This document shows, piece by piece, positions 1 through 10,726 of a stretch of DNA of 64,000 nt (position 1 is the first letter of the stretch; the number at the start of each line of letters is the position of its first letter). The stretch is from Mobula hypostoma (taxonomy: Eukaryota), in the NCBI RefSeq assembly GCF_963921235.1, contig NC_086112.1, forward strand, positions 53,816,001 to 53,880,000. Reading direction: 5' to 3'. The translations under genes and the position numbers were made by a program. The notes under the pieces were generated by a model that searched no databases, was not told where the DNA came from, and worked only from the letters and a program-made list of their open reading frames with translations.

Positions 1-2071
1 ATACAAAGTCAAACAACCAGGGTCACTCTCCATTCAAGACATCCACGGGCACAACATAAATATGAAGAGCAAGAAGGTGCAAGTAGCATTTCTGGGTGAC
101 AACGGCGCTGGCTCCAAATATCATTGTTATTATAATGCTATGTACACAAATATACTTGTCATATTTTCTTTAAAACACATTTATTCTAACTGCTTAAAAT
201 ATAGCAATAATCAAAGATAGATTTAAATACATAATGTTATTGTTTGCTATTTCCAAAAATGCAATGTGTATGATCTTTTCATTATTCAAGTGACAACCAC
301 ATTACCAGGGAGTTGCATTGCAGGAAAATGGGTAGTATCACGACTCTCTGTAATGTGAACCCATGTTATCTGTACACGCATCAAAAAAATGCAAATTGAA
401 AAATTAATTTACTTTGCCCCCCCCACCACAATTTCCACAAGTGTGAATTTTATTCTCTATCTCAACTTTTTTGGACAGCAACATACAACTTCTGCAAAGG
501 CAAATTTCTGTAACACAGGCATCATCTCTAGGTAAATTTGCAATCAGAGGCATACTAGCGTACTAGCCAGTTATCCAAACATAACATGTGTCTGTGCATT
601 CAAAATGTATGATACATTATTTGGTTCTCCAGGTGTTTTGGGCACAGCTCAGTGACATACTAATTCTTACAAGGGAATGAAAGAATTCCCTCCTTTGGGT
701 TCAGAATAAGAAGTAGTAAAGCTTCTTGAAAGTAGATGGAATGCTAAAATTGTACGTGTGTTTGATTATAAAGAAAGAGGCACACATAGCCATCATGTTT
801 TTCCAAAGACTACTCTCTTTGGTTTCCTAGAAATAGCCCTTACCAAATAGCAACCCTGGGTGCAAGTAAGATGCCAATGCAGCATCATTTCAAACAAACC
901 TTGATAGATAATGATAGAATGGGAAAATGGGTAACATAGAATCCAGAATATTAATGGTCAAATGGAATTCTAACACTTCATATTCATAACTCAACCACAT
1001 TAAGTGAAATTCTAGTCTTTAGTGAAGGTCATTCTGACTTCTGATCGAATTTAGAAAAGAAACTTCCAACAATAACCCCTGGCATGGATGGTGTTCAAGT
1101 GCATATTGAAAGTTTTATTACTCCGAGCTGCCCACAAAAAAGGTACAGAAAGCAGAAAGGAACAAAAAATATTCACCCTATAAAATATTACACTAACATC
1201 ACATTAATCTCTGAAAAAAAAGGGAGAGTGAAATCATTTTTTGACCATCACTTGCTCACAACATCTGGAAACCACTTCATCATTACTCAAGGTTTCCTAC
1301 AGAAAAGTAAGCATGCCTTTTCCTGGTTGAAATTAAACCTAAGGATTATGACTGGGTGAAAATAACATTCTTAGAACAGAATTGCCCGAAAATCTGCTGT
1401 TACGGTGCAATTATTTTGGCACCCATGAGGGATCAATGAAAAAAATCTTCCATGAACACGTTTCTTTCAAACTACAATCATCTGTAAATGAAAATAAGCA
1501 ATGTAAACATGCCAGCCCAACTCACCCCTTGATACTATTTCCTTCTACACAAGTCCTGAGGCAGGGTCACCAAGGGACACATGGACTATCCTTCTGCCTC
1601 CTCAGATGCTGCTTAATCTACCAAATTCGAGTTCCTCCAGCATTATTTTGCTCCAGAACCAAATATCTAAATTCTCGTGTCTCAAACTTCGGTTTATCAT
1701 CCCATTGTATGAGATGTATTCATACACAATTCCCAATAAACGTGGACAAATAGATGCACTTCTTCAAAAGTAGAGATTTAACTATACTATTTAAAATATA
1801 AATCAGTCCCAGTTCTCCATCCTATTACTCAGTTTGACCGAAGGTACAGTTTACCTCTGTCAATGAGCAATGGGGGGGGGGTGAGAAGAAGGGGGAGAGG
1901 GCATATCACTTCACCTTGAAAGATCTTGGGACATCATCAACAACTTCGCATACCATTTTTAATGGAATGTATAATACACGAGTCTTGCTGATTTCCGTAC
2001 AAAGCTTCTAACAGCCGACAAGATGCAAAACTGAATGCAAATAAATTGCTGTAGAAGAGATAGATACGTAC
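1..2071 (-). other. SLC12A2: 5' part of SLC12A2 intron 1
   Basis: AT-rich sequence following the GT donor. No further NKCC1 exon was recognised before the window edge. Confidence 0.85.
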
Positions 2072-2737
2072 CTTCTCGAGCTCATCGTGCAGCTCGGCCA
2101 GGCTGGGTCTGATCAGCTTCTCCCCCAGTTGGGCTACCGTGTTGCGGTAGTGGTCGATTCTGGGCACCGCGTCGATGGTGTTATGCCCGAAGGTCCTGAG
2201 ATAGTAGGTGTTACTGTGCGTGTCGTAGTAGTGGTGAGCGCTGGTGCCTGATGAGTGCAGACTACCCTCGCTGAGCATGGTATCGCCGTTCTGCGGGTAG
2301 CCGTTCATGGCTTCACTAGCTGTCGGCTGCCCGTAGGAACACGACGCCGAGGAAGTGGCGCCGGTGACGGCAGAGGTGGCTCCCGGCTCGCCCGAGCCCG
2401 GCTCCACGAAATTGACACGGAATCGTCCCTTGGCCTCTTCGGCGTCCGTGGCGGGGGGTAGCGACGACTCGACCGGGTTCGGGGCCGCGGCGCCACCATC
2501 CCTCCCGTCCTTGGTGCCGGGAGGCGGTGGCGGCGGCTGACCGGCAGCGGCATCGGCATCGGCGGGCGGGCTCCGACCCTTCTGGTCGTCGCCGGTGCCT
2601 CCTCCTCCCGCCTCGGTCACCAGGTCGACCTGGAAGCGGCTCTGACTCGCCACGGGTCGGAGCGGCGCTGCGGGCTGCTGCTGCGGCGGCGGCTCCCCCC
2701 CGGGCTCCGTGCCGACCTGGGGCTGCTCACCCTCCAT
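2072..2737 (-). CDS. SLC12A2: Na-K-2Cl cotransporter NKCC1, coding part of exon 1 (222 codons, cytoplasmic N-terminus)
   Basis: ATG at 2737 in strong Kozak context (AGAATGG). The translation contains [41 protein letters not shown] and [13 protein letters not shown], all hallmarks of NKCC1. It ends at a phase-0 donor AAG|GTACGT (GT at 2071-2070). The ORF-track extensions beyond these limits are UTR and intron read-through. Confidence 0.96.
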
Positions 2738-3140
2738 TCTCACCCCGCTATCAAACGGATTAAAAGTAACCAAACACCGACTTCTCCCCGGCTCCCTTGG
2801 GTCGCTGCTCCCGGTTCCCCCGCTCCCGACCGGTCAGGGCCGGCGACCACAGCCGCCGGTCATCAATGGCGAGGGTGGCCAAGCGCCGCTCGCATGGCCA
2901 CGTCTAGCTGAATGAAGCAAGTGAAGCGGTATATTTGTTTCCTTCCTTGTGCCTCTACCCTTTCCGTTCTGCTGGGCTGTTGAGCTTTCTTTTATCTGAC
3001 GCCGCGCCGGGCGGGCTGCCGCCACCGCTCCTCCCACTGGAGGCTGCCGACTACGGCGAGGGTGCTGCTGCTGGAGACGCTCAGTAAACATCGCGAGAGA
3101 GAGAGCGACCGCCTTCACCGCTGCGCTGCCTTTCGCTAGT
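2080..3140 (-). promoter_or_regulatory. CpG island over SLC12A2 exon 1, 5'UTR and proximal promoter
   Basis: Sharp rise in GC and CpG content compared with the AT-rich, CpG-poor flanks. The TSS cannot be fixed from sequence. Confidence 0.8.
2834..2895 (-). promoter_or_regulatory. Two overlapping short upstream ORFs in the putative SLC12A2 5'UTR
   Basis: ATG 2895 gives MRAALGHPRH*. Its TGA overlaps ATG 2863 (TGATG), which gives MTGGCGRRP* ending at 2834. Confidence 0.45.
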
Positions 3141-7682: not shown

Positions 7683-9095
7683 CAGAATCAGAATCAGGTT
7701 TATTGTCATCGGTATGTGACGTGAAATTTGTTAACTTAGCAGCAGCAGTTCAATGCAATACATAATCTAGCAGAGAGAGAAAAAGTAATAATAATAATAA
7801 ATGAAATAAAACATAATAATAAATAAACAAACAAGTAAATCAATTACATGTATTGAATAGATTTTTTTTTAATGTGCAAAAACAGAAATACTCTATATTA
7901 AAAAAAAAGTGCTGTAGTGTCCAAAGCTTCAAAGTCCATTTAGGAATCGGATGGTAGAGGGGAAGAAGCTGTTCCTGATTTGCTAAGTGTGTACCTTCAG
8001 GCTTCTGTATCTCCTACCTGACAGTAACAGTGAGAAAAGGGCATGCCCTGGGTGCTGGATGTCCTTTATAATGGGCACTGCCTTTCTGAGACATTGCTCC
8101 CTAAAGATGTCCTGGGTACTTTGTAGGCTAGTGCCCAAGATGGAGCTGACTAGACTTACAACCTTCTGCAACTTCTTTCAATCCTGTGCAGTAGCCCCTC
8201 CATACCAGACAGTGATGCAGCCTGTCAGAATGCTCTCCACGGTACAATTATAGAAGTTTTTGAGTGTATTTGTTGACATGCCAAATCTCTTCAAACTCCT
8301 AATGAAGTATAGGAGCTGTCTTGCCTTCTTATGACTACATCGTAATGTGGGGACCAGGTTAGATCCTCAGAGATCTTGACACCCAGGAACTTGAAGCTGC
8401 TCACTCTCTCCACTTCTGATCCCTCTATGAGGATTGGTATGTGCTCCTTCGTCTTACCCTTCCTGAAGTCCACAATCAGCTCTTTCATCTTACTGACGTT
8501 GAGTGCCAGGTTGTCACTGCGGCACCATTCCACTAGTTGGCATATCTCACTCCAGTACGCCCTCTCGTCACCACCTGAGATTCTACCAACAATGGTTGTA
8601 TTGTCAGCAAATTTGTAGATGGTATTTGAGCTATGCCTAGACACACAGTCATGTGTATATAGAGAGCAGAGCAGTGGGCTAAGCACACACCCCTGAGGTG
8701 CACCAGTGTTGCAAGGAGGATATGTTATCACCAATCCGCACAGACTGGGTCTTCCAGTTAGGAAGTCAAGGATCCAATTGCAGAGGGAGGTACAGAGGCC
8801 CAGGTTCTGCAACTTCTCGATCAAGTTTGTGGGGATGTTGTATTAAATGCTGAGCTATAGTCAATGAACAGCATCCTGACGTAGGTGTTTGTGTTGTCTA
8901 GGTGGTCTAAAGCCGTGTGAAGAGACATTGAGATTGTGTCTGCCGTTGACCTATTATGGCAATAGGCAAATTGTAATGGGTCTAGGTCCTTGCTGAGGCA
9001 GGAGTTCAGTCTAGTCATAACTAACCTCTCAAAGCATTTCATCACTGTCAATGTGAGTGCTACCAGGCGATAGTTATTAAGGCAGCCCACATTAT
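7683..9095 (-). mobile_element. Rex1/Babar-type LINE, 5'-truncated, with degenerate RT
   Basis: [47 protein letters not shown] and SFKFLGV motifs; (cagaat)n tail. Confidence 0.88.
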
Positions 9096-9363
9096 TCTGT
9101 GGTTTGTGTTATTGTTTATATTGCAGCTTTTTGCTGTAATTTTCAATGTTATCTCTTTTTGGCATACCTTTCATTTCTTCCTCATTTGGTTCCTTATTAA
9201 ATAATGCTTGCAGTGAGATGCCGACAGAAAGACAGACGAAAGGGGCAAAAGATAAATTCTAAAATGGTATAATTTCATTTGAAATAAAATTTTATTTCTC
9301 AATCTCAGGACATCATCAAACATCTACAGATAAAATTCAATACTTTAATCTTGTAAGTTTAAT

Positions 9364-9925
9364 ATTCGTGTTCATCCATCATTGTCGATGAAGACCTCGA
9401 CACCAATTGATGGTGTCGAGACTAGCGCATGATTTGGATTTAAATGAGGGAGAGTTGCGCAGCGTCAGCCTCACTCTCTCTTCCCAATTCCCATCCTGAT
9501 CCAGTGGCAAGACAAGAGTCGAGACGGCTAGAGATGGGACTAGGCGCAGTGGATGACCAGGACAACTTCTATGTCTTGTCGTGCTCTACGCATTCCACAA
9601 CGCTTGCAGAGACCACCTTCTTGACCATTGGACCTTCCATTGGTCTCGTCCGCTCAATCTGCCGCAGTCCATCTTCACATGCTGGGATAGACAACTCCCT
9701 ATCTCACTGAGGGTTTGGGACCCATCAGCTACCCTCACCTGGTTTAGCCGGCTTGTCGAAGCCGATGCCCGGGGTGTGGCCGGTGTTGCATGCAAACAGC
9801 TACGGGGAGCCACAGGTGAGAGCTGAGTGCCAGATGGGACCAAAGGTGGACTAACTGCCTTGAAAAGGATGCAACATGTTCCCCCACCAGAGGTGCTACC
9901 CCTCCCTGACACCCCCATACACCCC
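9364..9925 (-). mobile_element. Non-autonomous, ribozyme-headed short retroelement (probably RTE-clade derived)
   Basis: 12-bp TSD with one mismatch (tgtaagtttaat 9352-9363, tgcaagtttaat 9926-9937). GC-rich, no recognisable coding domain. GATG-like 3' tail and a perfect 10-bp hairpin at 9396-9420. The RTE assignment is from recalled similarity to RTE 5'UTRs. Confidence 0.75.
9732..9925 (-). ncRNA. HDV-like (nested double pseudoknot) self-cleaving ribozyme
   Basis: P1 GGGGUGU (9925-9919)/ACACCCC (9777-9771); P2 CUCUCACCUGU (9822-9812)/ACCAGGUGAGGG (9743-9732); P3 GGC/GCC; L3 starts UCCCCG; P1.1 CC/GG; GGGCA linker; P4 CGGCUU-CGAC-AAGCCG; J4/2 G-C-U-A-A with the catalytic C at 9747. Confidence 0.8.
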
Positions 9926-10726
9926 TGCAAGTTTAATGAGCATGTATTGAAATCACTTCACCTTGAAGAAAGAAAGAATTCTAGGACTGGAAGTCAGAGA
10001 TGGACTGTGAGTAAATAAGAGATGAGTAGAAATTGCAAGCATCATTTTTGAAAATACAGGAAACAATGACATCATTTTATGGAGATTGAGTTTTAGGTAT
10101 CTGTGAAGAATAAAGATGCATTTAACACAGCAAAATTTTCAAAAGCACAGAAATTGATGATAAGCATTTTTAGTCCAGTCGTAGTCACTCTGTTGTACAA
10201 TCCCCGCACCTTTATCAACAGTAGGAAAACAGGTATAAATGATGTGAGTTCAGAATTTCCAATACTTCCCATTTTTAGTGAAATAATAAAGCCATATGTT
10301 TTGCATTATTGGTTAATTTTTATATTTAAAAAGAAAATTATTAAATTTTCATCGTATATTTTAGGACTAAACTACAATTCATTTTATGTAAATTATATTA
10401 AATCTTTGGGATATTTCAACAACACATTATTTTGTCCTTGGTTCTTAAAATACAGCTAGTTAAATTATGTTTTACAATTCATTCTCAAGATTACAGTAGT
10501 TGTAGTAATGTATTAAAAATGTGGACCAATTCATCAACGTTATTCAGCTGGGCTTCTGTGCAATGTATTGTACAAATAGTCATCTATTAGCTTTGTAATA
10601 AATTGCACATAAGAAAAAGCTTGCAATGTGTCTTTTTATTAATAAAAATGTGATTTTAGGAGGGTATTTGCTGAGAGCCATATCAGTTAGGTACAATGGA
10701 TCCACTAGATATTTAGATTAGATTAT

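Follow-up and report, generated by a model that had tools for sequence, protein, structure and literature searches.

A predicted hepatitis delta virus-like ribozyme with an expanded L3 loop at the 5' end of a high-copy SINE-like element and of its putative RTE-type LINE partner

The stretch of Mobula hypostoma DNA analyzed here (contig NC_086112.1, positions 53,816,001 to 53,880,000; 64,000 nt, hereafter the window) carries on its minus strand a 562-nt retroposon resembling a short interspersed nuclear element (SINE). Its head is homologous to the 5' untranslated region (UTR) and its tail to the 3' end of a long interspersed nuclear element (LINE), and the whole is bracketed by a target-site duplication. 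The first 195 nt of the element, positions 9925 to 9731 of the minus strand, form a nested double pseudoknot of hepatitis delta virus (HDV) type with all helices in the HDV order, i.e., P1, J1/2, P2, P3, L3, P3', P1', P1.1, P4, J4/2, and P2' (P, paired region; J, joining segment; L, loop; the prime marks a 3' strand). Coordinates are window positions unless a locus is named, the ribozyme is read on the minus strand, and the fold was re-derived with a descriptor script. The element and its parts are as follows.

9364-9925, minus strand: SINE-like non-autonomous retroposon, 562 nt, with ~515 nt of LINE 5' UTR homology and ~50 nt of LINE 3' end
9926-9937, no strand assigned: 5' copy of the target-site duplication, ATTAAACTTGCA on the minus strand, adjoining G1 (9925)
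9352-9363, no strand assigned: 3' copy of the target-site duplication, ATTAAACTTACA on the minus strand, with 11 of 12 bases as in the 5' copy
9364-9420, minus strand: 3' tail of the element, with a perfect 10-bp hairpin (9396-9405 with 9411-9420) and a terminal stem-loop, ending ...GGAUGAAC-ACGAAU
9919-9925, minus strand: P1 5' strand, GGGGUGU, seven Watson-Crick pairs with 9771-9777; predicted cleavage 5' of G1 (9925)
9824-9918, minus strand: J1/2, a structured peripheral domain of 95 nt; closing helix 9906-9914 with 9825-9833, P1.2-like
9813-9823, minus strand: P2 5' strand, 11 contiguous pairs with 9731-9741, two of them G-U
9809-9811, minus strand: P3 5' strand, GGC, pairing with 9778-9780 (GCC)
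9781-9808, minus strand: expanded L3 of 28 nt, reading U-CC, N-N-G, and then an inserted 5-bp hairpin (9796-9800 with 9782-9786)
C9807 and C9806 with G9770 and G9769, minus strand: P1.1, two pairs between the CC of L3 and the GG after P1'
9771-9780, minus strand: P3 3' strand (9778-9780) followed by the P1 3' strand ACACCCC (9771-9777), from pairing and alignment
9765-9770, minus strand: GG of P1.1 (9769-9770) and J1.1/4, GCAU in the window copy and GCAA in the family consensus
9749-9764, minus strand: P4 hairpin, six pairs (9764-9759 with 9754-9749) and a 4-nt loop
9742-9748, minus strand: J4/2, GCUAAAC, with the candidate catalytic C at 9747
9731-9741, minus strand: P2 3' strand, the 3' edge of the ribozyme; in the divergent L006 and L031 the conserved block stops a few bases downstream

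An earlier sequence-only reading of the window had described a complete HDV-like ribozyme on this strand, and its essentials were recovered at 9731-9925: the seven Watson-Crick pairs of P1, the GGC/GCC of P3, the CC/GG of P1.1, the six pairs and tetraloop of P4, and the GCUAA of J4/2 with its C at 9747. The 11 pairs proposed for P2 also stand; we draw them as contiguous, and the version given earlier, which is offset by one base and bulges a U, amounts to the same. The P1 sequence recurs as the 5' strand of the J1/2 closing helix; this second copy normally closes the J1/2 rod, and the descriptor also takes it as an alternative P1. The P1 5' strand is thereby present in tandem duplicate (9906-9925, minus strand: GGGGUGU-AUG-GGGGUGU). 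L3 departs from the 7 to 8 nt expected of such ribozymes, with 28 nt in the window and 26 to 28 nt across the close family. A permissive version of the descriptor, run on shuffled 64-kb windows as a chance control, returned ~2.4 matches per window when P2 had at least 6 pairs and ~0.2 when it had at least 9; the site described here has 11 and a P4 hairpin. Because of this chance rate, a match in a single sequence is suggestive only, and the weight of the argument rests on covariation.

Relatives in other assemblies were recovered using as bait a spurious open reading frame (ORF) that spans the element head. The ribozyme is also present, with its helices in identical order, in ten loci of other assemblies and metagenomes (L001-L006, L010, L012, and L031 among them), nine of which carry downstream of it a LINE ORF with apurinic endonuclease (APE) and reverse transcriptase (RT) domains, starting ~800 to 930 nt after G1 in the eight measured. 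The other, L006, is a 510-bp contig without a LINE ORF on it. The ten loci include LINEs whose APE domain is only 54 to 69% identical to the query. In an ordinary MAFFT alignment of eight sequences, with the pseudoknots written out, 93.3% of the cells were paired, compared to 33 to 47% when the partners were slid by 1 to 3 columns. Eleven pairs were changed on both sides, compared to 0 to 3 in the slid controls, and none of 500 shuffles reached 11. These double changes are distributed over P1 (two), P2 (one), P4 (three), the L3 hairpin (one), and the J1/2 closing helix (four). In P1, L031 has A-U in place of G1-C and L012 has U-A in place of G2-C; one P2 pair is split evenly between U-A and A-U, with four sequences each; three P4 pairs are replaced on both sides in L031; and a G-C of the L3 hairpin becomes A-U in L003 and L010, in which the loop sequences are unrelated. 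P3 and P1.1 were invariant in this set, and the invariance of P1.1 provides no covariation either way. RNAalifold, which does not model pseudoknots, recovered P2, P4, and the L3 hairpin and folded J1/2 into a long rod-like stem, in which additional pairs are compensated. The earlier reading had proposed a covariation check, and compensatory changes were found in P1, P2, P4, the J1/2 closing helix, and the L3 hairpin of relatives; its claim that J1/2 folds on itself is supported by the four doubly changed pairs of the closing helix.

A wider clade was then examined with two covariance models, named R1 (the core model) and R2 (a second, broader model, as distinct from the R2 retrotransposon), over 92 sources totaling 503 kb on both strands: the window, 11 loci fetched through proteins, and 80 metagenome loci retrieved via the LINE N-terminal domain. 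The broader model recovered 25 cores, every one on the ORF strand, with no other match in the 503 kb; where the contig includes the LINE ORF, the core starts ~380 to 850 nt upstream of it. Fifteen divergent cores have a canonical L3 of 7 nt (e.g., UCCUCGU or UCCACGU) without the inserted hairpin, and the 28-nt L3 is therefore a derived insertion. It was introduced after the conserved G at L3 position 6; in the HDV crystal structure, the loop bases at that place point outward. The 25-core alignment was fitted to the covariance model and leans towards the structure; within it, 94% of the cells are paired, and two-sided changes affect 18 of 20 pairs, among them the three pairs of P3. In P2, 10 of the 11 pairs change in this way, and P3 occurs as GGC/GCC, GCC/GGC, or ACC/GGU. 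All relatives keep the U-CC and the position 6 G of L3 and the GG of P1.1, while L3 positions 4 and 5 vary, and all keep the C-N-R-A of J4/2, as CUAA, CAAA, or CUGA.

Among twelve relatives submitted to Rfam, only L009 matched an HDV-like family (drz-agam-1, 26.7 bits, below the gathering score of 37), and exact-pattern scans of viral and genome contig collections gave no match. The permissive descriptor was rejected as a clade-wide test, being unspecific (10 forward-strand and 10 reverse-strand matches among 54 LINE 5' regions); it also missed real cores with an imperfect P1. Three canonical-L3 relatives gave weak Rfam matches of 24 to 26 bits to the bacterial family int-alpA (L060:47-133, L054:356-408, and L049:301-376), which probably arose by chance. 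They sit at the same relative place, in J1/2 just upstream of the core, and mark a conserved three-helix J1/2 domain, unlike the rod of the window's family.

The abundance of the element and the position of its ends were read by mapping Logan contigs over 9200-10100, from two DNA runs and two runs that are probably RNA; all sequencing runs used here consist of assembled contigs, the ends of which at a repeat boundary are uninformative on cleavage. Summed contig depth was ~17 in the flanks and 2 to 7 x 10^5 inside 9386-9925. The same jump was seen in four organisms, and parts of the element were detected in several further ones. In the probable RNA runs, the flanks had zero or near-zero depth, with only a trace beyond 10006 in one run. 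Contigs crossing the upper edge read ...ATACACCCC and then pass into unlike A/T-rich sequence, directly after ...ACACCCC on the plus strand; since they diverge past ...ATACACCCC, family copies begin with GGGGUGUAU on the element strand. The earlier reading had suggested checking whether the 5' ends of genomic copies pile up at GGGGTGT, and those of the four species do end there. The body-tail junction is common to 66 to 75 contigs per DNA run (loose ends at 9408). No further copy of the element was found within the 64-kb window.

Among individual insertions, the window copy begins flush with its target-site duplication, which, as claimed earlier, starts at 9926 right beside G1 (12 nt with one mismatch, 9926-9937 and 9352-9363). 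L003 is flush with G1 as well, L001 is one base short and starts at G2, and in L005 four extra bases (AAAT, L005:10092-10095) separate the duplication from the first base of the element. In L002, an 11-bp duplication is flush with the second GGGGUGU, 10 nt in (L002:10041-10060). The insertions with an identifiable target-site duplication (window, L001, L002, L003, and L005) thus all start at G1 or at most 11 nt from it. The L002 start may reflect cleavage at an alternative site, given that the second P1 copy is accepted as an alternative P1, or a short, precise 5' truncation of 10 nt. More generally, the duplicated substrate strand may allow two cleavage sites or a conformational switch. L005 also has a 10-nt tandem duplication (UGAGGGUAGC twice) at its P2 3' strand (L005:10280-10299).

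The origin of the element can be traced through its two ends. Approximately 500 nt of it are 71 to 78% identical to the LINE 5' UTRs in L001-L005 and L010, and the homologous region sits just upstream of a single ORF encoding the APE endonuclease and reverse transcriptase. This ORF is intact in L004 (1069 amino acids) and L005 (1076 amino acids), each with Exo_endo_phos and RVT_1 domains. The last ~50 nt match the extreme 3' end of the LINEs, comprising a small stem-loop, GGACGAAC, and a short simple repeat; in the alignment with L003, L004, L005, L007, L010, and L012, the shared end reads ...GACGGACGAAC before the repeat. The LINE tails finish in (ACA)n, (GTA)n, or (ATC)n, with ~40 nt between the stop codon and the end. 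Elements of the RTE clade are described as having a single ORF, an extremely short 3' UTR, and a simple-repeat end (PMC2887409), and by the architecture of its ORF and 3' UTR the autonomous partner appears to be an RTE-type LINE. Identity with Rex3 was rejected, as the LINE tail differs from the published Rex3 tail, GCG(GAA)2(GATG)n. Because its head matches the LINE 5' UTR and its tail the LINE 3' end, the element is an internally deleted, non-autonomous LINE derivative that kept the 5' UTR and the 3' end and lost the ORF, akin to the short internally deleted elements (SIDEs) of R2. Its 3' tail is presumed to be a recognition site for the LINE reverse transcriptase. In size and number it is SINE-like; ARAGORN found no tRNA-like head and Rfam gave no match, and in place of the RNA polymerase III (Pol III)-type head of a classical SINE it has one homologous to the LINE 5' UTR.

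The ~640 nt that separate the ribozyme from the LINE ORF in the 5' UTR show strong nucleotide conservation across subfamilies with diverged ribozymes (window 9410-9728, minus strand; L004:10410-11053; likewise L003, L007-L010, L012, L043, and L074). The SINE-like element retains the first half of this region. Some of the conserved blocks look mutually complementary (GAGAGAGUGAGG with CUCUCCCUCAC, and GAGCAGCCC with CACUGCUC), and the region may be a second structured RNA, for instance a translation or protein-binding element. Near the RTE-type copy in L002 lies an intact APE and RT ORF of another LINE (999 amino acids, L002:5391-8390, minus strand), the upstream region of which gave no match by element BLAST or with the covariance models.

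Variation among genomic copies was assessed in a second contig set (four organisms, thousands of genomic contigs) at a threshold of at least 5%. Once inserted, copies decay neutrally, so that a variant found at high frequency reflects a difference between masters. In all four species such variants avoid P1', P1.1, P3, J4/2, and both strands of P2, with one exception at 9771, a CpG transition that would give a G1-U wobble. They cluster instead in J1/2, at L3 positions 4 and 5 (C to A), in hairpin loops, that of P4 included, and at compensated P4 positions; one genomic subfamily flips G9763-C9750 to C-G, as seen from the loose-end consensus and the 9750 G-to-C variant. This distribution fits selection on the ribozyme core in master copies. 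The window copy departs from the family consensus at 9765 in J1.1/4 (U instead of the A that, on the minus strand, makes up ~92 to 99% of summed contig depth for the family in the four species), at 9783 (C instead of G, creating a C-C mismatch within the L3 hairpin), at 9787 in the loop of that hairpin (A instead of G), and at several sites of J1/2, with an extra G near 9912. Its helices P1 to P4, P1.1, and C9747 are intact. Given the A-to-U change in J1.1/4 and the mismatch in the L3 hairpin, whether this copy would itself cleave is uncertain, with roughly even odds.

We consider it probable (about 85%) that both an RTE-type LINE family and the SINE-like element that arose from it by internal deletion, represented here by 9364-9925, begin with a 195-nt HDV-like ribozyme. 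At the level of the family, the data support a predicted cleavage site that coincides with the 5' end of the mobile element. R2, L1Tc, baggins, and RTE elements are known to have their RNAs freed from longer transcripts by HDV-like ribozymes (PMC6765202), a structured J1/2 (the P1.2 "pinch" domain) accelerates large members by bringing P1 and P2 together (PMC4908430), and ribozyme-headed, ORF-less R2 derivatives are mobilized in trans (PMC3414825). By a similar route, the element would be transcribed, probably often within a longer read-through RNA, and the nested double pseudoknot would fold with the aid of the J1/2 rod, which would keep P1 beside P2. The J4/2 cytosine (9747) would catalyze scission just 5' of G1, and the released RNA would therefore begin exactly at the first base of the element. 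The LINE endonuclease/reverse transcriptase protein, acting in trans for the SINE-like element, would bind the 3' stem-loop, and the RNA would be copied into a target rich in A and T. The resulting insertions would be full length and would have their first base next to the target-site duplication.

Several observations weigh against this interpretation. The nested fold has an unexceptional minimum free energy relative to shuffles (z = +0.66, for a G+C-rich sequence and with the pseudoknot left out of the model), and Rfam returned no ribozyme match, either for the window at the gathering score or for 9500-10100 at an E value of at most 10. L3 has 28 nt, compared to about 7 in canonical members, and we found no active HDV-like ribozyme with a comparable L3 insert in the literature searched. 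P1 and P3 are nearly invariant in the close family, and their covariation comes from two sequences (P1) or from the model-fitted wider alignment (P3). RNAalifold also proposed a competing pairing of nt 2-6 with the CACUC just before P2. As the main fold this pairing was rejected, for none of its pairs is changed on both sides, and in L012 it is broken whereas P1-P1' is compensated; it is a possible competing conformer. Finally, a defined 5' end would equally be expected from an internal promoter.

That last point belongs to an alternative in which the pseudoknot is a non-catalytic 5' UTR structure, used for protein binding, 5'-end protection, or ribosome recruitment, and an internal promoter sets the end at G1. 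Covariation demonstrates a conserved fold and not catalysis, a promoter start also yields a sharp 5' end, and R2 HDV-like folds are reported to bind protein and aid translation too (PMC6765202). The ~640 nt of downstream 5' UTR are also strongly conserved across subfamilies, so the UTR holds other functional RNA. Nonetheless, the invariant bases are precisely those of the HDV catalytic core (the J4/2 cytosine, the U-CC...G of L3, and the GG of P1.1), which a purely architectural role would not need, and independent insertions of the element begin with the first nucleotide of P1. To our knowledge, moreover, every tested RNA with an HDV-like fold cleaves. We therefore regard a purely structural role as improbable. 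A chance resemblance in the G+C-rich head of a repeat would fit the ~2.4 chance matches of the permissive descriptor per 64 kb, its equal success on the forward and reverse strands of LINE 5' regions, the silence of Rfam, and the unremarkable folding energy. Set against the compensatory changes in five helices, which no shuffle equaled, and against 25 of 25 covariance-model matches on the ORF strand, upstream of the ORF where the contig includes one, coincidence is scarcely credible.

A further alternative concerns the window copy rather than the family: the ribozyme would be active in master LINEs and the copy at 9364-9925 a dead relic, through its J1.1/4 and L3 hairpin substitutions or through lack of transcription. 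We rate this at slightly less than an even chance. It agrees with the differences from the consensus at 9765, 9783, 9787, and several J1/2 sites, with flanks devoid of depth in the probable RNA runs save for a trace well upstream, and with the neutral decay of most SINE copies after insertion. Yet the helices, P1.1, and the J4/2 cytosine are intact, and the changed sites are neither the catalytic base nor part of the substrate helix. Such a relic would narrow, and not contradict, the proposal of a ribozyme-headed family.

The closest known counterparts are the HDV-like ribozymes of RTE and baggins elements, including the large drz-Agam-2 type with P1.2 (PMC6765202; PMC4908430). They have the same nested double-pseudoknot order and the same place at the 5' end of a LINE with a single APE and RT ORF and a very short, simple-repeat 3' end, and their cleavage site is the first base of the element, as predicted here; the drz-Agam-2 type also has a long J1/2 closed by a helix next to P1 and P2. 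The family described here differs from them by the 5-bp hairpin in L3 (26 to 28 nt), the tandem P1 5' strand, and the lack of recognition by Rfam. The R2 ribozyme and R2 SIDEs (PMC3414825; PMC3774820) offer a second parallel: an HDV-like ribozyme frees the element RNA from a co-transcript, as would be the case here, and the derivatives, which have lost the ORF but retain the ribozyme at the 5' end and the protein-binding region at the 3' end, are mobilized in trans, which we infer likewise for the present element. However, R2 and its SIDEs are site specific in 28S ribosomal DNA, use a restriction-like endonuclease, and have a low copy number, whereas the element in the window is dispersed, has AT-rich target-site duplications, belongs to an APE-type LINE by its homology, and reaches a depth ~four orders of magnitude above its single-copy flanks. 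In Trypanosoma cruzi, the autonomous LINE L1Tc and its truncated partner NARTc similarly share an HDV-like ribozyme, Pr77, at their first bases (PMC3185411; PMC3383444), but Pr77 is only 77 nt long, doubles as a promoter, belongs to a protist host and another LINE clade, and has neither an L3 insert nor a long J1/2.

Classical SINEs with tRNA, 7SL, or 5S heads are comparable in being short, non-coding, and high-copy, with target-site duplications and a LINE-derived 3' tail; they differ by their Pol III-type head, the place of which is taken here by the LINE's own 5' UTR with its ribozyme. The genomic HDV and mammalian CPEB3 ribozymes also have a 7-bp P1 starting from G, an L3 beginning U-CC, a 2-bp P1.1, and a J4/2 cytosine, but they are compact (about 68 to 85 nt), lie elsewhere than at a transposon 5' end, and have an L3 of 7 to 8 nt. 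The J1.1/4 region of the family consensus, GGGCAAC, reads like that of genomic HDV.

HDV-like ribozymes on RTE elements are thus a published kind, and what is new is the hairpin-expanded L3, the duplicated P1 strand, and the very high-copy, ribozyme-headed SINE-like derivative. A bolder proposal, which we consider rather unlikely as a whole, is that the inserted-hairpin L3 together with the tandem substrate strand defines a structurally new HDV-like form, that its promoter-less derivative has risen ~four orders of magnitude above single-copy depth in several species, and that self-cleavage out of read-through RNA can take the place of the Pol III head by which vertebrate SINEs are defined. If the consensus cleaves, an entire extra helix could be accommodated in the HDV catalytic loop; the insert would explain why standard descriptors and Rfam miss the family and would suggest that other members have been overlooked. 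A ribozyme head alone would then be enough for very high-copy SINE-like amplification in a vertebrate, and the thousands of copies in several species would provide a natural variant set for sequence-function studies of the fold. For genome annotation, these repeats become RTE deletion derivatives rather than unclassified SINEs.

A G+C-rich first exon at 1940-2773 (minus strand; G+C 0.60 to 0.67 at 2001-3000) encodes an AA_permease_N domain, as in SLC12 cation-chloride cotransporters. The element had been placed ~7 kb upstream of SLC12A2 on the same strand; a gene with this domain, a candidate SLC12 member, does begin ~6.6 kb downstream of it on that strand. Closer by, ~270 nt beyond the 3' copy of the target-site duplication, two adjacent ORF fragments at 8294-9090 (minus strand) match RVT_1 and are what is left of another LINE that has no relation to the RTE-type partner.

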